This document shows, one piece after another, positions 6,801 through 22,577 of a stretch of DNA of 64,000 nucleotides (position 1 is its first letter; each line of letters begins with the position of its first letter). A program made the position numbers and the translations under genes. This stretch comes from Pelomyxa schiedti. Lineage: Eukaryota; Protista; Evosea. The stretch lies in assembly GCA_020536535.1 (NCBI GenBank), contig JAHLWZ010000381.1:1-64000 (forward strand), given 5' to 3'. The notes beneath the pieces are model-generated. The model did not search any database. It was not told where the DNA came from and saw only the letters and a list, made by a program, of their open reading frames with translations.

Positions 6801-9565
6801 TCCGCTGAGCAAACAGCTAATCCCAGGTTCGATTTATTTGGAGACTTAGACTTTTTTTTATGCACTGTAGATTCTTACAGACACTCCTTGATGATATTGC
6901 AGTATTCGGGGAGCACGAAGCACTCGAAAAACGGATTAAGCAATGTCTTGCAGCGAAGAACACATCTAAGCTATATGAGCTTCTTCTCAACAGACTTGAA
7001 TCGGACTATGACCCTGCAAAGAAGGGAATAGTGAAGCTATTCATGGCTTTAATTGGTGCATCTAGACGTGGTCTCGATCTAGAAAACGAGGTTTCCGTAT
7101 TGCTCGAGCAGAGTGGGATCACGCCTGATGAATGGTGCCCCTTTCCACTTCCGCTTTGTCTTCTGCCCTCTTACACTTGCCACTGCTAAACTTTTAATTA
7201 CCAATTTAAGGTCCCCTCTGTTTGTAGTCATCGAGGAGCTTTTTATATCTATGAGAGGTATACTGAGCTTCGCAAACGAGGATATTGCTAAGGCTGCAAG
7301 ATCTGTCTTCCTTTGGGATAAAACAATTAGAAACCAATTTCATCTTAAGATAGCAAATTTCTTCTCTGGTATACAAGGCTTTACAGAAAGAAAGGTTTCC
7401 ATCCCAAAAAAAAAAAAAATCAAATTCCTAACTAAAACAAATCAAAAGCTTGAAGAGTTACCTTACCAGTTGGAGATGGCCGAAGAATGGCCAAAATTAG
7501 TTGCTCTTCTCTGTGATGCAACTCTCTTTGATAAACTCTTCACACCTACAACCAAGTTTGACCTGGTACATCTAGAGCCAAAATATTTTGTCTTATTTAT
7601 GATCAATCCAGTTCCATTGGGTTCGACTGTGTGAAGGCAATGTGCCAGGATTTGATATTTGTGCCCCGTTTTTGGATAAAGTGTCTCGGAGTATATTCCC
7701 ACCTGACCTTATCCCAGCTGATTTCTGTTATAAGTAAGTCATTACTGAAACATGACCCGCTAAAAAACATTACCCATAGGGTTGGCCGGTGCTTTGACGA
7801 AATGTCAAAGATTAAAGGAGCCGAGGTAATGTACCAAAAAGCTATTGAGTTATACTATGCCACATCCATGCCTCTTGAAGTCGCCAAAGTCAAACGATAC
7901 TTAGCACAGCTGTACCACATGACCAGCAGGTTTGTCATACCCACCTCGTTTGTTGGTCAATTTTTGAAGGAGCGACAAAGCTGAAGCAATGCTGAAGGAT
8001 CTCACTGAAATTTACGAAAAGGAGAAGGGTCCTGATGATATTGAGATAGCAACTACGTTAAACAGTTTGGGAAGTCTATATGTTGACCTTTGCCAGTAAA
8101 CTGTTCATGACAAGAAGTCAACTATTTACCTTTTTCACAGGGGACCAAGTGCACATCCTGTTCTAGAACGAGCTTTGCGAATATGTAAGTGACCTTTCCA
8201 GGCTTTCTAAGCGTTAAACTACAACAAGGCGAGGCACAAGTCGGTCCTGATCACAATATTACTGCTGATATCGCTTATACTCTTGGTGCTTTATATCATT
8301 ACGAGCGCGACTTACTTCCCAAAAATCTCGAAAAATCGGAAGAATTTCTCAAGGTACCTCTCCACTCACTAATACAAGTCTTACATGTGACTTAGCGAGC
8401 ACTGAATATCAAAGAAAAGACATTTGGCTACTACCACCCAGATGTTGCGTGGGTGCTCAATAAACTGGGGTGTGTGTACATGGAACAAGATCAGTATAAT
8501 GATGCTGAAGAGTGCTTTACTGTATGTGGCACTCCTCATCGAGCCTCAGCACTAACTTCCCTTTAACAGATGGCACTAGAAATTCGAGAAATCTCCCTTG
8601 GACCAAAGCACGCTTCCGTAGCACAATCACTGGAAAATGTACTAACACTATTCGCCCTTCAGGAACGCTACACAACTGCCGAAGACTGTGGCAGAAGGTT
8701 GACTATAATAGTGCAATCAGTCCGCTAATGCTTATCTCTCTATAGAGCACTTGACATTCTCTCTGAAACCTTTGGAGAAAATAGCTTCCAAGTGAGCAGC
8801 ATATTGCTTCGAGTGGGTGCCCTCATGTTTGTAATGGAGAAGAAACCTCAAGGGACACAAGACCTGACTCGCGCAATTGCAATTCGCACAGCGCTTTTTG
8901 GACCAGGTCGGTGACGTGCTCTCCATTTGCTTTACTCAAACCCCCCGCCCCCGCCCTCTTCCAGATCATCCACACACAAAGGAGGCAAAGCTGACCCTGG
9001 AGGAGCTGGTGGCACCACCCAAGCCGGAACCGCCATCGATCAGGGAGCAGCCCAAGGCCCCACCCCCGCCGCCACCCCCGCCTCCTCGCGCCTTCGTGGC
9101 CCCGCCGCCGCCACCCCCAACGCCCGGCGGTGCACCGGGCGGAATCCCGCCGCCCCCGCCGCCTCCACCTCCGCCGCCTCCCCCTCCTTCATCTGGAAAG
9201 CCGCCGCCCAAGACGAAGGTCACTGCTGCTGTGGCCCTGGAGAAGACTGAGAGTGTGTCGCTTGAGGATGCGATTCAGAAACAGACCGGGCTCCACCACG
9301 TCACGGAGGCGAATGATAGGTCCAGCGCCAGGTTGATAATCTCTCTTTCTTCACATATGTATTCCTGCCACTTACGGATATTCACACTAGCCGGAATGCA
9401 GCAGCCATGGCTGGACTCAAGACCCGTAGGATGGTTGAAGTGAAGGGCAAAGCCAAAGCCCCCAGGTCCACACTGGCACAGTTCTTGCAAGCAAACAAGG
9501 CCACAACCCAGTTCACACAGCAACCAGTACTGGATGTCAAGCCGACGATGGACAAGAAGAGCTGA
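3835..9565 (+). CDS. Multidomain STAND protein: BRCT - IPT/TIG - DUF4062 - NACHT-like P-loop - TPR repeats - proline-rich - WH2 (NPHP3/TTC41-like core)
   Basis: BRCT GVFSDHVFFLL..IIRDYGGEVS..VTHVVV; IPT GPNTGDFRLALFGVHF; DUF4062 IRIFISSPFRDMKEER..YVDLRWGV..FVGLYGERYGW; Walker A IVGG|GGSGKSAL; TPRs (DVAWVLNKLGCVY, HASVAQSLEN); poly-Pro; WH2-like SLEDAIQKQTGLHHVTEAND. Confidence 0.8.
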
Positions 9566-9793: not shown

Positions 9794-12700
9794 ATGGCGT
9801 CAACGGGCGGGTGCTGCGTGCTGCTGTGCGTGGGTAGTGTGGACACAAAAAAGAAGGCAAGGAGTCAACTGCGTGAGTGTGTCAACAAAGTGAAAGGCTT
9901 CACCACAAGTTTCGTCTTCGGCCCAAAGGTCCGTGCGTGCTTTGGTTGTGTTTTTTTTTGGTTTTTTTGTTTTGTTTTTTGTGTTTTGGTTTTTTGCTTT
10001 TGGTTGTCTGTGATCATGTTAATTTTTTTTTCTCTTGGTTGTGTGGACTGCACAGGTGACACACGTAGTCGTTGACGATGTCGGCTGGAGGATATTTTCT
10101 ATTTCTCCAAGGAAGATTGACTTGATAAAGAGATTGCGGATACACGTGGTGAGTTGGATGTTTGAAATTTCCGGAATCTTGTTAGCCACCTTTTTTTTAC
10201 GACTCTATTTGAATTAGGTTACACCTGCCTTTTTAGATGCCTGTACATCAAATAGCAGAATTATGGAATGCTCAGATTTTGTGTATAATACTGTGAAGGA
10301 GGTTGTACTGAGCACAGAACCTCAGATATACTTGCCACCACAAGAACCAGACCCTGTACCTCCTGCGCCTGCTGCCTCCAGGGATACTTATATTCGAAGG
10401 GAAGTCATTGTTCCCTACAAATCCAAAGATGACCCTTTTAATGAAGCGGGTGCCTGGCTCGTTCAACACCATCTACTGCAAAAGCCATCATGGTTAGATC
10501 ATTTTCGTTTCTAAGTATCCCTCTTTTCTAATTCGTTTCTAGCTTGGTGAAACTAGAATTGCATACCCGCAGCTCTTCTGATAATGCTTGGCGTGTGTAT
10601 GAAGAAGTTGTGCCATGCCTTTCCACTGTGCCACCACAGACAAATACTCAGGGGAAATCAAAAAAGACCATCTCCCAACCAACACACAGGAGGCTGAGCC
10701 ATCTCTTAGCCTCGGCCTCAGAGGCTATTTCTGTGTACTCCGCTCTCTATGAGAATTATACCAACGTTGAAGGCTACACCCGCGTTGGAATACCTCCGTT
10801 TTCTTCCTTGGGATCAGATTTGGTATATGCTTCTCCAACGTTCTTTTTTTAACTATTAAAAGATAGGTAATGGATTAAGTCCCGGGTCTGTTCTTCCTGC
10901 AATGATATCACAGCTTGTGCAAGTCATTTTTAACGGTCAGTGATGATAGAACTCTGTTTTCGAATAACATTTTTCAGCTTCATCTTCTAAGTTTGCTGGC
11001 TTGAATACTATGACACTGGATATATCATTAGACACTCTAAATGAGGCAGAGGCTATTCTATGGTCCCTGCAAGAGCTTAGCCTTTCCAATCAACAAGGCT
11101 CTCCGAAATTCATTGAGGTATGGCACTTGAACTCGATCTTTCTCTGTGTAAATTATTTTAACAGCTAAATGATAAACTTTCCTCGTTGCTCCCATTTAGT
11201 GATCAGCACATAACCTCAAATGAAGCATTGCTTGAGAAATATGAGTTCATCCAAACTCTAAAAGATTCTCTTTGCCTGAATGAAGGTACCCACTAAACGT
11301 GCATATTTAAGCTAATTTTCACCAGGGATCACACTTCCAGGCAGTTCTGTACAGTCCAACTCCATCATAGATATGCATTACCGCAGTCTCAATTGTCGTT
11401 TGGAATATACAGATGATCCTGCTGTGAGAGAGCTAACTTCCCGTGTCCAAGCCTCTCTAACATCAGCCCCTACCTTGCTACACGTGGAACATGTGTTTCA
11501 TGTTGCGCGCCCTTCGGAAAATGAAGTCTTTTCTAATGTGGGTAATGTGAAACTTCTATTTCACGGTACCAAAGTGGAGCGGGTAGCTGGTATTCTTTCA
11601 CATGGACTGGTTTTACCAAAGGTTTCCCTCAAAGCAATTCGATCTATTTTCTCAGTGCCTTAGGTTTCTGTAACTAAACTTGGAATCAAGAGAGTGGATG
11701 CTGGCCAACTTGGGGTGCACATTTGTTTCGTTTAGTTTCGTTTTACATGCCCTACAGAATGGTATATACTTTGCAACAGATGCCGCTGTAAGTGCTAAAT
11801 ACTGTAACTCTTTTGGGGAAACGTCGTTCCTATTGGTGGCTTCAGTTTCCTTAGGCAAATCTATGGATACACCAGCTCCACGAGTAGGAACCACTGCCGA
11901 CACTTTACCCAACGGGTATCTGGAAATTCGAAGGGAATTTATTCTCTAATATGTTTCTTCAGATTCCACAGTGTGCACTCCATCCCGAGGCATACCGACC
12001 CCAACTCGGCCTTCGAGGATGAGGAATTCTGTGTACCTCTCCCAATTTGTGAAACTGCATCATGACCACCGACAGGTATTTGATAGCCGACAAATAATCC
12101 TGGAATACATTATCCAACTTACAAAAGCCCCTAAATCAATACCATCAACACTACCAATGCCGTCTTTTCCACAAGTTTCAATCTCTGATCCAACCACCGC
12201 CCCAGACGATCTGAAGTCTATTTTTCTTGCACCACCTTCTCTCAGCGTTTCACCCACGAAAAAGCAATCTCCTGTATACCCGGTTTTGATTGGTCAAGGC
12301 GGAGTACGTTTTTCAGTTGAAAGTACAACTGTGGCAGCCAGAATACTTGATTTAGTGGCTGAAGTTGTAGTTATTCAACATTTTAGCAATACTGGCGTTG
12401 TAGCTTGTGAAGCGAAGTATATATGCCCAATAGATAGCCATGGTTGTATATCTGCCCCCACAATACTCTAACCTCTCCTAGCTGCTGTTTGTGCTTTCGA
12501 ATGTTACATAAATGACAAGCATGTAGTGGCACACATAGAAGAAAAAGGTCTTTTTCTTTTTTTATTGTGCCAATTGAAACAATGTCAAATATTAGGTAAG
12601 GCTCGAAAAGAATACAAAGAAGGTACACGTTTGTGCTTGACTTTTTTGTAACTTATAAGAATACAGCAATTGAGCAAGGGCATGGAGCGTAGGTAAGCCA

Positions 12701-15700
12701 GATTCCTTCTACTTCTTTACCTCTATTAGGTATTTACTCGAAGAAGAATCCCCAGATGCATGGTGCATGTCTCTTGGAAATCTTCCAGGCATATCTTGCC
12801 ATGATGTTCTTACTTCCTCTTATTCTTCAAAGCAAACGCCGAAATTGTTGTTAAAATTACATATGTGGAAGACCTGGCTTTAGCATCTAATGGGGTAAGT
12901 CCGTCAAAAGTAGTGAAATTTGTGTCTAATCAACAATACTCAGATTACCTTTACCTTACCTGCGGCTCTTGCCGGCCGTGAGGACCGTCTCAATAGTGTA
13001 ACAACAACCCAAACGGCAGTTGCAACAGTTATCAAAGTATGCTCCAAACAACTAGGGTAGGTATCTCATTTAGTCAGGCTCATTCCAGCGCGCCGTCATT
13101 CCATTTGGAAGCGGGAATTACTATGCCCTATGACATCACTGGCATCACTTCACCATCTCATTTGAAAGATGTTCAAGTGAAACACACCAACACAAAGGCA
13201 ACTGTCAGGGCTTTAATGACGGAACTTACAGCAGACTTTGTACTACTTATTTCTATCAAGAACGCCCATGAACCCCGAATGTGGTTGGAAGTAAAGGACT
13301 CATCTCTACTGCTTTTTACTTAACACTTTCAGGTGGATGATACACAAAACTGGGCAGCGATGATTTCTATATCCCCAGATTTTCAAAATTATATACAGTC
13401 TGCCTGTCAGAGCAGATCTGAGGTCATATTCGTGGTTGACAGGTCCATAAGCATGGCCTCCAATCTTGCAACTTTACGTTGGGCTCTTCAGGTAATCAGA
13501 TGGATGATTTTGCACTCTCACGAAACTCAGATACTCATATCCCAACTGGGAAGTGAGGATATGTTTAATGTAGTTGGATTTGGATCCCACTTTGAGTCGT
13601 TATTTGTACAGTCGCAATCTGCAACTTCCGCCAAACCTGTCGGGTACAGATATGCCCAAATGTTACAAGCCACCTTTGGGGGTACTTCCCGTCACCATAC
13701 CTCCCTCCCCAAGCTTAATCACCTTTTTCAACAGGCACAAATCTTTACTCTGTTCTCAGAGCAGTGTTTTCTCTTGGTCAATCCAATGACTTCTCTTCAA
13801 GAACAGTAATCCTTCTCACTGATGGCCTTTTTGACATTTTTCCCGTATTGCCCATAGTGAAAAGGTGGAGAGACTCCTTGTATCTCAGTATTAAATCTGT
13901 TTAGTGCCCGGGCTCACACCAAACTATTTACTGTTGGAATCGGGGAGGCATCCAGGCATTCTATTTGCACCCTTGCACGGATAGGTGGGGGATGCTGTCA
14001 GTTCGTTCCATCCAATCCCTCACCCAAACATGAGAAACTGTTGAATCACATGTTAGCACAACGAAATCAAAATGTGGCTTCCCTAAATTTGGAACATTCT
14101 TATACTGTTTTAGACTTTATCTGGTATAAACATCAAGTGGCACACAACACACACAATTAAGCAAGTACCCTCTGAAATTTACAATATGTTTCAGAATCAG
14201 GTTTTCCTCCAAGACTAGTTTTCCTTTTTCTAACACATTAAAGTCTTATACTATTTATGGTCTCCTTAGTGGCATATGTAACCAGGTGTCAATTCAGGGG
14301 AATATCGGAGCACAGTTTTACCCTCACCCAATAAATTAGTGGTAATCGAGAGCAGGGAGTTTTCCACAACAGTGTCATCAAGTGAACTTACTGCTACACA
14401 TGGCACATTGATTCACAAACTGGCAGCCAGAGAGCTTATTCGAGATTGGGGGGAAAATTCTCTCCACGAACAGGATACAGAGCACTTTGTACAAAAAAAT
14501 AATATGGTTTCAGATGTTATTGCTCTAAGTAAAAAGTATGGATATCAAAATACAAAAATGGAGTTAGGATAGTAATATACTACAAAAAGGTATGGCTTCA
14601 TCACTCCTTTTACTTCTTTTGTGGCAGTGGAAGAGAGAAACCGTAATGACGCCTTAGTTTTGAAAGCACCTTCAGTGAAAGAGATTGTATCAGAGTCTAA
14701 ATTTTTGTACTTCCTTTGACTGCCAACAGCTGCAAGGCCATGACGTCGATGAAATCAAAGAAATTGCTTGGGAGCATGACCTTGAACCAGTCCCAAAGAA
14801 GGACGAACTTCAGAAACAACGAGATTCAAATTCCTTTTCCATTGCTCTTTATGGTGACCCACAGACTGGTATAAAAACTCACCCACACTTTTACCTCCTA
14901 AGACATCTCAAGGTAAAACAGCTTGGCTAAAACGCATGGTTTTTCCTTCAAATTTGCAACCCAATCCCCATTTATACAACTACAGCTGAGCGGGGAGTTT
15001 GAGCACAAATACATTGTAACCCAGGAGCCAGAGCAATTCAAACTGACTCTAAGTACAAATCGAGGTGCTATCCACTTTAATTTGTACGACATGCCTGGTG
15101 TAGCTACCAGCACAGCAACCCCTCCTACTGCCCATGATGGTAGTATAGTCTTCTTTGACGTTACTTCTCGCGCGTCATATAAAAATCTGCCCATCTGGTA
15201 CATGAAGGCTGGAAGCACTTCCGGTTCACCTACAAGTCCAGTTGTTGTATTTGTTGGCAATAAAGTGGACTGCTCAGAACGGAAACTTCATGCTCGACAA
15301 ATTGTCTTTCATAAGAAAAAGGTATTGGCTCTCCTTTCTCAAGTGTCTTCCTGATTGCCAATTTAGAATTGCAAGTACTATGACCTAAGGTACCTCCTTT
15401 TATGATATCCACTCTTAAGTATTTACTCTTTAGTGTTAAATCTTCGTACAACCTGGAGTCACCTCTACTAAGTCTTGCCCGGTCCCTTTTATGGTTGTGC
15501 ACAATCCTTCTCCCTGAATTTAATTCTTCTCAGTGACCCACAATTGGAGTTTGTTCAAGAAGTGGCACTTGCTCCACCTGAAGTAACTTTGGATCAGGCA
15601 TTAATAAAGAGGTGGGAACAGGATTTAGCTGATGCAGCATCAATCCCCCTTCCCGATGAGGATGATGACTTTGGAGGCACTGTTCCATCCAGTGCTGTCG

Positions 15701-17971
15701 CTCCTCAGCATGCAGTGCCGTCCAGTACCTTTGATTTCGCTCTCCGACCAAGCAAAGAAAAAAGTGCACCAGGTCCAACAGGCTTTTTCAGTCAATCTGC
15801 TACAGTTCCATCTGTGCAAGCTTCTGTTACCCATTCAGTACCATCTCTTTTTAGCTCTCCAGTTGCACCTTCCTTTAATTTCGCTTCACAAGCCACTACC
15901 TCTCGAGGGTTATTTTCTCCCCAAGGACAAGTGACGTCAACTCAACCTTCTCCTCTATTTGGCGCACCTCTGCCCTCCTATACTCCACCGGCCCCGTCAC
16001 CTTTTGGTAGTTCTTCATCATTGTTTTCTGGCAGTTCGTTTGGATCTCAACCACAACCTTCTACCGCTGCATTTGGCACTGCAAGCACTTCTTCACTTTT
16101 TGGCGGATCCCAACAGGTACCTGCCTCGAGTGGGGGCGCTGTGAGTGCGTTTGGAGCTCTAGCATCTCCTACTTCCGTTTTTCCACAGGCATCATTTGGC
16201 ATGGCAAGCCCTGCAATGTCCACTACAATCCCTGCAGCCACTTGTTGTCTGCCGTCCATCTTTCCTGCAGCCAGTTCTACTACTTCCACTCTCTTTTCTG
16301 CACCACAAATATTTCCCTCGGCCGCATCTTCCACAGCACAGTTGTTCCCAGCGCCTCAATTGTCCTCTTTCCCAACATTCAGTCTACCGGCCACTCCTGC
16401 AGCCAGTTGTACGTCCACCTTCAGTCTACAGGCCTTTCCTGCAGCCAGTTCTACTACTTCCACTCTCTTTTCTACACCACAAGTATTTTCCTCTGCACCA
16501 ACTTCCGTAACGGCGTTGCCGCCGGCGCAGCAATTACCGTCTTCCGCCACTTTTGCTCCACCCACTACTCCACAGCTCAGGTCTCCACATCCTGGGACTG
16601 GAACAATTTCATTTGCAGCTGCCAGAGCGCGAAGCAAGGCATTTCAAAATAGGAAACACTCTGAATCAGATATTAGTAATACAAGCAAGTCTTCAATTGA
16701 CCCTCCCTTGCCTCCGTTCTGCTGCCGTGCTTGTTGCAGCCCCTCCACACTCAGTGATTCCCAATTGCAGTTTGTACTTAAGGGACCTAAGAATACGAAG
16801 AGGATCTGGGGTGTGTGCTGGATGGATGCCGTTCTTGCATTAGCATCAACCTTGTCACCTTTACGTGACTGGGCATGTTGTACTAGGAACGGAGAACCTC
16901 CTATTGGCTATGCTGGCAGCTTACTTGAGTGTATCACATCATTTTTCCGCTGTTGGATGTAAGTAATTCATCAACCTATCAATGTTTCAACCCCTTAAGA
17001 TCTGAGGACGTAGGAAGTGTAACTTACAATAAGTATCTGAATACGACACACAAACGCACAGCAAGCAAATTTTCCGATCTCGGATTCGCCGAAGGAAAGC
17101 CACAGTGCGTTGTCAAGGCACTCAATTGCTTGATTGAGGAAGCTTCACTATTTATTACAGAGGTAGGTAGAACATTCATGCTTTCCCTTACAAGCATGAC
17201 TGTACAGGTACGAGACATTATTACTGTGCCCTCCACAAATCTTGGGGAGATCCTCACACGTAAATTGGAACAAATAATTCCGCAAATAATCACAATTTCA
17301 GAGTTTACTGTTGCAAGTGCACCTCCAAAGTGGATCATATGTATAAATAGTACATGCAGGAAGATACCTCGTACCACTTTATACCAATACAAGCTAGGTC
17401 TAATTTGATTTTGATAGGGATACCAGACGATTGTGCCTATGTTTTGCATTCTTTCATTGTATTTGAACCCATTGGGAAGTATTTTGACATGCCGGTGAAT
17501 CACTTTGTTACCGTATCCCCCGACCAGAAGGGCTACTGGATATACGATGATCTGTTGTGCCTCACTCCTGGAGGTCTGTGCTCCCCGCACCATGCTTTCC
17601 ACACAGTCGATTCTAATGCCGTAACAACAACAGAATGGCAAGGCGGATTCTGTTCGTGGGACTCTCCGGACAGTACCCAAACATTCAAGAAACTCCGTTC
17701 CAAAGTTCCTGTGAGCACTCCTGATCCCAACCAACACCCTTCTCATGCCAACACATATAATGACCAAACATTAGGTTTTCATTCTACGGCACCAAGATGT
17801 CCCTTGGCCACCAACAAGTACCTACCAGGCTCCTCGTTTGCGCTCCGAACAGTTCTCACAGTACTGAACTCCAACATTCTAAGCATAAAACAGAGAAGCA
17901 TAAAGTTTCGTTTTTTTTTCATGTACACATTCCACACGGCCAAGACACAAAATCTGGTCCGTTCAGAATAA
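9794..17971 (+). CDS. PARP4 (vault PARP)-like protein fused to a Ran-like GTPase, an FG-rich region and a USP-fold (USPL1-like) isopeptidase; 3' end approximate
   Basis: BRCT (GPK|VTHVVVDD), PARP (LLFHGT, GIYFA, AFEDEEF), VIT (AEVVVIQHFSN..EAKYICPID), vWA (IFVVDRSISM), PARP4-like FTSFVAVEER..DVDEIKEIAW, then Ran motifs, FG repeats and Cys/His boxes. The domain junctions lie inside exons. Confidence 0.8.
11373..12120 (+). other. PARP catalytic domain with an intact H-Y-E triad
   Basis: KLLFHGT (His), GIYFATDAAVSAKY (Tyr), FHSVHS..NSAFEDEEF|..QIILEYII (Glu); resembles the human PARP4 motif DFEDDEFVVY..VKMKYII as I recall it. Confidence 0.85.
14830..15670 (+). other. Ran-like small GTPase domain including the C-terminal acidic tail
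   Basis: GDPQTGKT (spliced), LSGEFEHKYIVT, TNRGAIHFNLYDMPG, FDVTSRASYKNLPIW, GNKVD, IVFHKKK|NCKYYDLSVKSSYNLE, DPQLEFVQEVALAPPEVTLD..LPDEDDDF; colinear with Ran throughout. Confidence 0.9.
16260..16488 (+). repeat. Internal ~55-bp direct repeat (16260-16314 and 16434-16488) in the S/T/P/A-rich linker
   Basis: CTTTCCTGCAGCCAGTTCTACTACTTCCACTCTCTTTTCT(G/A)CACCACAA(A/G)TATTT occurs twice, 174 nt apart; encodes FPAASSTTSTLFS(A/T)PQ. Confidence 0.9.
16780..17650 (+). other. USP-fold cysteine isopeptidase domain (C19/C98, USPL1-like)
   Basis: Cys box GPKNTKRIWGVCWMDAVLALASTLSPLRDW (Cys 16816); His box YVLHSFIVF..VNHFVTVSPDQKGYWIYDDL (His 17501, Asp 17546); linked by GT-AG introns that preserve frame. 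Confidence 0.65.
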
Positions 17972-18356: not shown

Positions 18357-20702
18357 ATGAAGGGCAAAAAGGGTAGCAGCGGCCACAGTGGAAAGACGAC
18401 CAAGTCTACGTCGACTACGTCTACGTCCACAACCACGTCATCGTCGTCCACCACATCCAAGAGGAAGAGGCCGAGACACGACGCTCGCGAGGAGGNNNNN
18501 NNNNNNNNNNNNNNNNNNNNNNNNNNNNNNNNNNNNNNNNNNNNNNNNNNNNNNNNNNNNNNNNNNNNNNNNNNNNNNNNNNNNNNNNNNNNNNNAGCAG
18601 CGGCCACAGTGGAAAGACGACCAAGTCTACGTCGACTACGTCTACGTCCACAACCACGTCATCGTCGTCCACCACATCCAAGAGGAAGAGGCCGAGACAC
18701 GACGCTCGCGAGGAGGAGGAAGAGGAGGATGACATCATGGTCGACACAGACTCCCCTCACTTGAAAAGTGCGTTGTCGTTGGGGTTGTTTGTTTTTTTTT
18801 TTTTTTTTTCCCTTTTCCCTTTTTTTCCCCCATTATTCCCCCCTTTTTTTAACCATCTCAACAAGTATGGTTTGGTTCTCGTATTTTTTTTTATTTACCA
18901 CTAGTACGATGTTCTTAAATATTTTTTCTTTTCCCTATTAATGTAGTTTAGGGTTGATTCAGGAAGAATACAAGTTATGGAAGAAAAATGCCCCATTTTT
19001 GTACGATATTGTGATTACCCATGCTCTTGAATGGCCATCCAACACTATATCTTGGTTACCAGACAAAATTGAGTGCGTTGCATTTTTTTTTTTTTTTTTT
19101 CTCCCTTTCTTGAATAACAAAACCCTCAACAACAGTACGAAAGATCGGGCAATTACCGAGAAAAGATTGCTACTTGGAACTCTTACAAATGGAACAGACC
19201 AGAATTATCTCATGCTTGGCAGAGTTAAACTTCCCAACGAAAGTTTACAAACTGAATCTGACCGGGAAGGTAGGTGCTTTACGACCTCTTTTTATGGTGT
19301 AATTTAGGTTTGTTAGATTACAGAATGGTCTCAGACAGAATTGAAATTTTTCAGAAAATTCGCCATGATGGTGATGTGAACAGGTAGTGGGAGTCTGTTA
19401 ATTGACCTAATCCTTGACCAGAGCCCGCTCTATGCCACAAAATCATCATCTGATTGCAACCAAGTCCTCCCTCTCGGAAGTGACTATTTTCGATACATCC
19501 AAACATACCGTAACCACCGAACCACCAGGGAAAGTGAAACCACAAATACGGCTTGGCGGTCACACAAAAGAAGGGTCTGTTACTGTGGCAGAATTTCTTT
19601 CCTTACAGTGTCAAGATACGGGCTTGCATGGAACCCAATAAGAAGTGGGATGTTGATCAGTGGTTCAGAAGATTGCTTGATTTGCATGTGGGATATAAAT
19701 GCACGCTCTGCAACACAACCAGTATCACCGAGTAACATATTTAAAGGACACTCTAGTGCTGTGGAGGTACTCCTGTGGATTTTTGGCTCCTAACAAACCT
19801 TGATAACATAAATGCAGGATGTTGCGTGGCATGTAAAACAAGAACATGTTTTTGGATCAGTAGGAGACGATAAACAACTTTTAATGTTGGTATTTCCCTC
19901 CCTCTCGCTTAGCATTTCCACCTGACATACCTCCTAAAAGGTGGGACATAAGAGAGCCAAGTAGATTCGTTCAATCTGTAGTGGCTCATAAAATGGATGT
20001 TCATAGTATTGCTTTCAATCCATTTTGTGAGCACCTCCTTGCTACCTCTTCCGCTGATAAGGTTTGAACAGGAAACTTGAACTTATTATTAAACATTCTT
20101 CCAGACCGTTGCTCTTTGGGACCTTCGTAATCTCAAATCCAGACTTTACGAGCTAGTTGGGCACAGCGATGAAGTTCTTCCTATCGCCTGGTCACCTCAC
20201 TGCGAGTCTGTGATAGGTTCTGCTGGTAGAGACAGGTTTATTTCTCTTTACTACTTTACAAGGCTTTTACCGGAATCACCAGACGTTTGCATGTGTGGGA
20301 CCTCAGCAGAATCGGAGACAAGCAAACCGCCGAAGAAGCAGCAGACGGACCGCCCGAGCTTTTGGTAAGAGTGCATTTGTCCTCATTTGTTCTGATTGCT
20401 GTTGCTAGTTCATTCATGGAGGTCACACTGGCTCCGTGGTCGATTTTGCCTTCGACACCCGTGATCCGTGGCTTATGTCATCAGTCGCGGAAGGCAACAT
20501 TCTTCAGACGTGGAAGATGGTATCTCATCCAACCCGTCGCCCTTCTAATCATTCATTCCACTTACCGATGCTCCTACAGGCTGAGACTATTTTTTCTGAG
20601 TGTGCCTTTACCACCCTTTCACCTGCCCCCACATCAACCGCCTCAACAACAAGCACTAGCACCACCACATCAACAAGTGCCGCAGCAAAGAAAGGTACCT
20701 GA
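18357..20702 (+). CDS. RBBP4: Histone-binding WD40 protein RBBP4/RBBP7/MSI1 family, with Ser/Thr-rich termini
   Basis: [59 protein letters not shown]|[29 protein letters not shown]|FIHGGHT. Exon 1 is interrupted by a gap with a duplicated flank. Confidence 0.93.
18376..18715. other. Scaffold gap (18496-18595) with an exactly duplicated ~120-bp flank (assembly overlap artefact)
   Basis: 18376-18495 is repeated at 18596-18715 across the 100 N. Confidence 0.9.
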
Positions 20703-22236: not shown

Positions 22237-22577
22237 CTAACCTAAATCCACAACGGTGCTGTTCTCCTCATTCCATTTCCATGTGTACTTCGAACGCAAT
22301 TTGTACTGAGGGTCTGAATACCTGGCCATTTCCAGATCCTGGAGATTACATTTGGCANNNNNNNNNNNNNNNNNNNNNNNNNNNNNNNNNNNNNNNNNNN
22401 NNNNNNNNNNNNNNNNNNNNNNNNNNNNNNNNNNNNNNNNNNNNNNNNNNNNNNNNNCTAACCTAAATCCACAACGGTGCTGTTCTCCTCATTCCATTTC
22501 CATGTGTACTTCGAACGCAATTTGTACTGAGGGTCTGAATACCTGGCCATTTCCAGATCCTGGAGATTACATTTGGC
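22237..22577. other. Scaffold gap (22358-22457) with a duplicated ~120-bp flank
   Basis: CTAACCTAAATCC...ATTTGGCA occurs on both sides of the 100 N. Confidence 0.9.

Follow-up and report, generated by a model that had tools for sequence, protein, structure and literature searches.

Introduction

Ran is normally a freely diffusible switch that takes its meaning from GTP/GDP cycling across the nuclear envelope. In Rnd proteins and RhoH, substitutions at the positions equivalent to Ras 12, 59 and 61 keep the protein constitutively bound to GTP, and the naturally Gln-less Rap is supplied by RapGAP with a catalytic residue in trans. Here we analyze a 64,000-nt stretch of the Pelomyxa schiedti genome (assembly GCA_020536535.1, contig JAHLWZ010000381.1, positions 1 to 64,000 of the forward strand), hereafter the window, which holds a gene for a PARP4-like protein with an internal Ran-derived domain. 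In this domain the catalytic Gln of Ran (Q69) is replaced by Val and the switch II face is rewritten, while the nucleotide pocket and the Ran-specific C-terminal extension are kept, a pattern from which we propose that a former switch may have become a fixed docking module.

The contacts that RanGAP makes with Ran involve the P-loop and the two switches (PMC7930572, PMC7264121). Karyopherins distinguish GTP from GDP by means of HEAT repeats 1-3, which recognize parts of both switches (PMC7930572), and read the basic patch with HEAT 7 (PMC7264121, PMC7930572). The acidic tail of Ran serves RanBP1 and RanBP2 and stabilizes the GDP form (PMC7264121, PMC7930572). Pseudo-GTPases of class i, of which AAGAB is an example, are devoid of any G motifs (PMC12490416), whereas the Pelomyxa domain retains them. 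With PARP4, or vault PARP (clade 5), the Pelomyxa protein shares a BRCT-like region followed by PARP, VIT and vWA domains in identical order, but its C-terminal part is replaced by a tail made up of Ran, FG and protease-like segments. Additional and varied C-terminal domains are frequent among the PARP4-like proteins of Amoebozoa, and there is no Ran domain among the PARP4-like proteins described in that work (PMC4245714). The literature yielded nothing specific on a PARP4-Ran fusion or on Ran pseudo-GTPases.

Identity of the Ran-derived domain

The gene runs from its ATG at 9794 to a stop codon at 17865-17867 (9794..17867, + strand), as placed by exact spliced mapping of the public protein KAH3763470.1 onto the window. 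It comprises 39 exons and 38 GT..AG introns with a median length of 43.5 nt, and specifies 2087 amino acids arranged in the order BRCT-like, PARP, VIT, vWA, Ran-like, FG tract and Cys-protease-like tail. A previous reading of this DNA, made from the letters and open reading frames only (hereafter the sequence-only reading), had proposed a Ran domain fused to a PARP; searches against PDB chains, BLASTP, Foldseek and phylogeny all identified the domain as genuinely Ran-derived, and the protein in which it is lodged is PARP4-like. The top PDB matches of the 112-aa exon at 14986-15321 in phmmer searches were exclusively Ran, with RanQ69L chains best (E 3e-19) and Rab next (E 4e-5), and the exon that follows the Ran core matched Ran 171-215, including LPDEDDD (DPQLEFV..ALAPPEV..LPDEDDDF; E 3e-10). 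When spliced, the domain showed 47% identity to vertebrate Ran over 214 residues (BLASTP, E 8e-65), and Pfam placed a Ras-family match at residues 1254-1408 of KAH3763470.1. AF2 modeling on a 43-sequence alignment predicted the G domain with confidence (pLDDT 89) and placed coil at the position of alpha2, the switch II helix of Ran; all of the top 50 Foldseek hits of this predicted domain were Ran.

In a tree built on a 35-row subset with a Rab-like outgroup, the domain fell inside the Ran family (support 100/99), on a terminal branch of 0.76 changes per site as against 0.03-0.14 for the canonical Rans of the same tree. A quick 98-row tree lengthened this branch to 1.13 changes per site and left the domain in a polytomy. 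No supported sister group was recovered, and canonical Ran was at least as close to the Pelomyxa domain as any of the Ran-like paralogs examined. In the 35-row subset, a grouping of the domain with the second Ran copies of P0074 and P0005, two tandem-Ran proteins described below, was neither supported nor rejected (p-AU 0.49). Besides fold and overall identity, canonical Ran/Gsp1 (human RAN; PDB 1I2M, 1IBR, 1RRP, 1K5D) and the Pelomyxa domain have in common the G1 frame, T42, DxxG, NKVD, S-x-K, the basic patch, the C-terminal helix and the acidic tail. Canonical Ran is, however, a free 25-kDa protein that ends in this tail, whereas the Pelomyxa domain forms residues 1249-1456 of 2087 and its acidic tail is internal, running straight into the FG tract within a shared exon.

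Loss of the catalytic glutamine and uneven conservation of Ran surfaces

The landmarks of the domain, with residues in human Ran numbering, are listed below.

14829-15672 (+): Ran-derived G domain with Ran C-terminal extension, residues 1249-1456 of the protein, six exons
14853-14868 and 14913-14920 (+): G1 P-loop GDPQTGKT, split by a 44-nt GT..AG intron (14869-14912) and differing from the Ran P-loop GDGGTGKT by G19P and G20Q
15019-15021 (+): equivalent of Ran T42 (switch I, Mg2+ ligand), in the context HKYIVT
15100-15141 (+): rewritten switch II, where the S/T/P/A-rich VATSTATPPTAHDG replaces the Ran sequence QEKFGGLRDGYYIQAQC, which is longer by 3 residues
15202-15240 (+): rewritten second half of helix alpha3 and next loop, MKAGSTSGSPTSP, replacing RDLVRVCENIP with 0/11 identical residues and 3 residues longer
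15259-15270 (+): G4 NKVD, identical to Ran
15310-15321 (+): basic patch HKKK (Ran 139-142, HRKK)
15388-15440 (+): G5 SVK (Ran SAK), interrupted by an intron at 15390-15433
15655-15672 (+): acidic tail DEDDDF (Ran 211-DEDDDL-216)

The exons that make up the domain are ..14868, 14913-14938, 14986-15321, 15367-15389, 15434-15493 and 15534... At 15088-15105, the codons GAC ATG CCT GGT GTA GCT specify DMPGVA in place of the DTAGQE of Ran, and HMMER alignment to PDB chains set the Val encoded by GTA (15100-15102) in the Ran Q69 column, just as the sequence-only reading had it. Since two to three base changes separate CAA or CAG from GTA, this Val is not a single-base sequencing error. That reading had also asked whether reads might carry Gln here: the DNA contigs of two public runs (X3 and X4) both agree with GTA, and over 12000-16289 the former showed zero differences and the latter a single one, at 15802. 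The differences noted between runs all lie outside the Ran domain, namely 15802 A>C (DNA run X4), 15994 C>A (RNA run X1), an intronic 1-nt deletion at 13528 (X4) and 17105 G>A (X2 and X4).

Divergence from Ran is distributed very unevenly over the domain. All of the nucleotide and Mg2+ ligands, that is, K23, T24, T42, D65, G68, N122, K123, D125, S150 and K152, are retained within an intact GxxxxGKT frame, whereas Q69 and both P-loop glycines are changed (Q69V, G19P, G20Q). The G1, switch I Thr, G4 and G5 elements that had been listed as kept are thus all present, with G1 and G5 each split by an intron. Switch I preserves 8 of its 16 residues, F35, K38, Y39 and T42 among them, and helix alpha5 preserves 12 of 19. 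Identity to human Ran rises to 55% (22/40) in the Ran-specific C-terminal extension, above the domain average; of the three positions mutated in PDB entries 5yro, 5yst and 5ytb, L182 is kept here and the other two are conservatively replaced (M189 by L and Y197 by W). By contrast, switch II (65-80) is shortened by 3 residues and, of its 16 positions, conserves only D65 and G68, so that it has indeed been rewritten as claimed, and alpha3 106-116 has been replaced entirely. The rest of the domain is ~51% identical to Ran; by a hypergeometric calculation, two or fewer identities in the 27 positions of these two segments have a probability of 6e-6, a figure to be read in the light of the segments having been picked post hoc. 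Because RCC1 and RanGAP read switch II and the P-loop, and the state-sensing HEAT repeats read parts of both switches, the rewriting of switch II and alpha3 would have removed the face presented to regulators and to karyopherins as sensors of the nucleotide state, while sparing the nucleotide pocket and the parts that face Ran-binding domains (RanBDs).

Two origins of the rewritten segments were considered and rejected. Inspection by eye of the other two reading frames of both segments disclosed no resemblance to Ran, as a compensated frameshift would have left, and blastn-short comparison of the S/T/P-rich loops with the downstream FG/ST-rich tract returned only chance matches of 7-9 nt, which speaks against copying from that tract. 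A further substitution, A151V in G5 (the Ras A146 position), could be taken as a sign of fast nucleotide exchange; we gave it little weight because Val is common at that column (23 of 133 Ran-like representative domains).

A candidate fixed docking module

On established Ras and Ran biochemistry, the replacement of the catalytic Gln by Val together with G19P and G20Q makes a nucleotide-bound, poorly hydrolyzing domain a reasonable inference. The explanation that we favor, with confidence that is about evenly balanced, is that the Ran-derived domain is a nucleotide-binding pseudo-GTPase with poor or no hydrolysis, insensitive to RCC1 and RanGAP, that serves the PARP4-like enzyme as a fixed docking module. 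Under this scheme, the domain would load nucleotide once, probably GTP since its cellular concentration exceeds that of GDP, and would hydrolyze it poorly or never. RCC1 and RanGAP would be unable to address the domain, which would then offer the enzyme a constant docking surface instead of a switch. Its partners would presumably read the conserved surfaces; what is retained, namely switch I, the basic patch and a C-terminal extension that ends in the acidic tail, fits RanBD-type domains or new partners better than the canonical contact of switch II with importin-beta. Rnd proteins and RhoH, which serve as fixed interaction modules, resemble the Pelomyxa domain in the G fold, the intact pocket and the replaced catalytic positions, but their switch II is structured.

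Several points weigh against this scheme. Nucleotide binding by the domain is predicted from its intact motifs alone, and Pro at the position equivalent to Ras G12 is compatible with intrinsic hydrolysis by Ras, so that the P-loop changes by themselves are no proof of a dead enzyme. The S/T/P-rich replacements could reflect relaxed constraint instead of a new function. An exhaustive HMMER search of 1.84 billion protein representatives found no ortholog from which selection on the domain (dN/dS, conservation of the Val) could be read. Lastly, no RNA contig lies on 14786-15780, where the Ran exons are, and this gap leaves their transcription and their joining to the vWA exons without direct RNA support.

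Were the domain to be nucleotide-loaded and to bind RanBDs or transport receptors, it would constitute a natural separation-of-function Ran, suited to dissecting which surfaces each partner needs, and would link PARP4-like ADP-ribosylation to the nuclear transport machinery. What makes the case unusual is a Ran module, hard-wired into a large enzyme, that has lost the catalytic Gln, the face of switch II and, probably, the contacts with its regulators, whereas the pocket and the tail are preserved.

Glutamine loss among Ran-like proteins

We then asked how rare such a module is. In the best 150 cluster representatives of the HMMER search, 121 of about 157 Ran-like domains have Gln at the Q69 column and about 36 have another residue (S, N, V, R, K, F, L and others). 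Complete sequence was available for 31 of the Gln-less domains; 12 of these, the Pelomyxa domain included, keep all nine of the nucleotide-contact residues tested. Judging from these alignments, natural loss of Q69 is recurrent among uncharacterised protist Ran paralogs, which makes the fusion, together with the pattern of lost surfaces, more noteworthy than the single substitution. Gln-less paralogs, tandem-Ran proteins among them, include P0003, P0005, P0007, P0008 and P0074 (Physarum polycephalum EP00026 P006974). Divergent protist paralogs resemble the Pelomyxa domain in that they lack Q69 and that their switch II is rewritten, NKxD and the acidic tail often being preserved, but none of them is fused to a PARP.

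Neither the HMMER search nor one directed at long proteins that carry a comparable Ran domain disclosed another PARP-Ran fusion; the latter returned only a Bathycoccus Ras/Ran-ankyrin-kinase protein. A word-index protein search with the Ran exon, insensitive and length-limited, retrieved one canonical Ran only. The combination of a PARP4-like protein and a Ran-derived, pseudo-GTPase-like module was thus found in one species only.

Some of the Gln-less proteins deserve mention in their own right. P0074 (538 aa) and P0005 (611 aa, from a JGI metagenome) begin with FG-type low-complexity sequence and continue with two Ran domains, a joining of FG-type sequence to Ran that they share with the Pelomyxa protein. 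Their first Ran domains are near-canonical (DTAGQEKFGGLRDGYY in P0074 and CCAGQEKFGGLRDGYY in P0005) and pair in the tree at 98/98; in the second ones, Q69 is changed to S (P0074) or E, switch II is rewritten and the acidic tail is kept. This architecture hints at a family, as yet undescribed and perhaps amoebozoan, that unites FG sequence with tandem Ran domains. P0003 (JGI metagenome, 416 aa) is also a tandem Ran, with a natural Q69F in copy 1 (DIAGFETL) and Q69L in copy 2 (DIAGLETL); the latter, with a switch II otherwise fairly Ran-like, is the natural counterpart of the laboratory Q69L mutant.

Alternative explanations

The alternative that survives best, which we nonetheless consider unlikely, is that the domain is a decaying relic, that is, a Ran module captured by fusion and drifting ever since, devoid of nucleotide binding and at most a folded spacer. 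The length of its branch (0.76 and 1.13 changes per site in the two trees), the lack of an ortholog or a supported sister group and the conversion of two surface elements into low-complexity S/T/P-rich loops are all in keeping with decay, as is the survey, where roughly a quarter of the divergent Ran-like representatives are Gln-less and, among the 31 complete ones, 19 lack one or more of the nucleotide-contact residues as well. Against drift, however, speak a complete set of nucleotide and Mg2+ ligands, five in-phase introns in an open frame and a strongly non-uniform divergence, in which the C-terminal extension is conserved above the domain average and the predicted fold remains confident.

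The sequence-only reading had gone further and envisaged a permanently 'on' mimic of RanQ69L, the GTPase-deficient laboratory mutant (PDB 3NBY and others), which would hold importin-beta-family receptors, and RanBDs, and so tether the PARP to the transport machinery. The likeness lies in a hydrophobic residue at the position of the catalytic Gln and in RanQ69L chains being the best PDB sequence matches, and the poor hydrolysis that this idea implies is reasonable (Q69V, G19P and G20Q with nucleotide motifs intact). HKKK and a largely kept switch I, both contributors to karyopherin binding, lend it some further support, as does the FG tract, the other classic karyopherin ligand, which directly adjoins the domain in a shared exon. 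RanQ69L, nevertheless, keeps the native switch II, alpha3, P-loop and effector surfaces that are rewritten in the Pelomyxa domain. HEAT repeats 1-3 sense GTP versus GDP through parts of switch I and switch II that are native in RanQ69L (PMC7930572), whereas here switch II is shortened with 2 of 16 residues kept and alpha3 106-116 is wholly replaced. Because RanQ69L retains the switch II that is rewritten in Pelomyxa, its constitutive importin-beta binding is not transferable, and we regard a mimic of this kind as quite unlikely. Of the two kinds of tether that had been proposed, the karyopherin one thus loses its footing with switch II and alpha3, while the one to RanBDs fits better with the retained switch I, HKKK and C-terminal extension.

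A bolder extension, which to us is a long shot, would have the Ran module stay fixed in a GTP-like state and act with the FG tract to capture karyopherins or RanBD-bearing nucleoporins, thereby stationing PARP activity and a ubiquitin/SUMO-type isopeptidase at the nuclear pores (or vaults) of this multinucleate anaerobic amoeba. RanBP2 unites domains that bind Ran with FG repeats and a SUMO ligase, and the Pelomyxa protein, if a docking enzyme, would be its mirror image.

We also weighed a merged gene model, in which annotation has joined two neighboring genes, one PARP4-like and the other encoding Ran, FG and protease parts, or the Ran exons stay outside the mature mRNA. The published annotation was produced with Augustus, PASA and EVM and transcriptome data on a single-cell assembly (PMC8887013), a setting in which merging is conceivable. 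RNA contigs cover 12323-13227 (spliced), about 13400-14630 and 15857-17906, so that upstream of the RNA gap noted above coverage stops near 14630 (the end, read from a depth table, of a spliced contig that starts at 13527), and retention of intron 14687-14729 would bring in a stop at 14717. Conversely, all 15 of the splice joints seen in single-cell RNA contigs agree with the gene model, and a spliced RNA contig reaches the poly(A) at 17906, which marks the 3' end on the + strand. From 14679 to the P-loop there is no ATG in frame, every ATG present being out of frame, and the introns at the junction are of usual size (54, 43 and 44 nt), have GT..AG ends and keep the frame. Exon 15534-16958 is a single open frame that encompasses Ran tail, FG tract and Cys box, and its RNA starts at 15857, more than 100 codons upstream of the first Met of the exon. 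DNA contigs from two runs are moreover unbroken over 12000-16289. Collectively, these data indicate that the PARP4-like, Ran, FG and protease-like parts very probably belong to a single gene, and render a merged model decidedly improbable.

A working switch with private regulators, for instance a GAP that gives the catalytic residue in trans, would be compatible with the intact nucleotide pocket and switch I and has a general precedent in Rap and RapGAP, but is highly improbable for a domain tethered within a 2087-aa protein, with no known candidate regulator and with the switch II that must move for output reduced to a shortened S/T/P-rich coil.

Domain organization of the PARP4-like protein

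KAH3763470.1, annotated at NCBI as 'protein mono-ADP-ribosyltransferase PARP4 [Pelomyxa schiedti]', is 100% identical to the product of the gene, and the HMMER search recovered the identical 2087-aa protein (P0002). The remaining mapped parts of the protein are the following.

11439-12120 (+): PARP catalytic domain, residues 411-579 (Pfam PF00644, E 2.8e-22)
12319-12864 (+): VIT domain, residues 646-755 (Pfam PF08487, E 1.6e-31)
13420-14004 (+): vWA domain, residues 897-1047 (Pfam PF13768 / PF00092; VWA_3 E 7.2e-14)
15673-16224 (+): FG tract, 7 FG dipeptides plus a junction FG
16762-17864 (+): putative Cys-protease-like tail, with GVCWMDAV (Cys-box-like) and NHFVTV..WIYDD (His-box-like)

The BRCT-like N-terminus is sub-threshold, scoring 17-19 bits against a Pfam cut-off of 21.3. 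No region for binding of the major vault protein (MVP) was recognizable from the sequence. As judged by eye, the PARP domain (11439-12120, residues 449-566) apparently retains an H-Y-E-type triad context, with LLFHGT, GIYFAT and EEFCVF. Upstream of the ATG at 9794, another + strand gene ends in a long poly-proline, FH1-like tract (9000-9440). Three runs of exactly 100 N (562-661, 18496-18595 and 22358-22457), consistent with RNA-based scaffolding of the assembly (PMC8887013), all fall outside the gene.

FG tract and C-terminal tail

Seven to eight FG dipeptides occur within residues 1456-1640, and residues 1456-1790 are rich in S/A/P/T/F, with 9.3% Phe and 4% charged residues. With its repeated FG, low charge and abundance of S/T/P/A, this segment has the composition of FG nucleoporins, and no pore-anchoring domain was identified in the protein.

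The C-terminal tail gave no Pfam match even at E up to 10, the Peptidase_C98 and UCH profiles (USPL1 / USP-type isopeptidases) included, no PDB sequence match and no relative by word search. Its single-sequence AF2 model was unusable (pLDDT 34), and its atlas features lean to UCH/papain-like protease clusters (0.90-0.96).

ST/F-rich repeats continue beyond the FG tract to about 16674. Those at 16270-16473 (AASSTTSTLFS.PQ.F) fragment the DNA and RNA contigs of all four runs into pieces of 194-204 nt; some of the contig records fit two places there, and the copy number of the repeat in the assembly may be uncertain.

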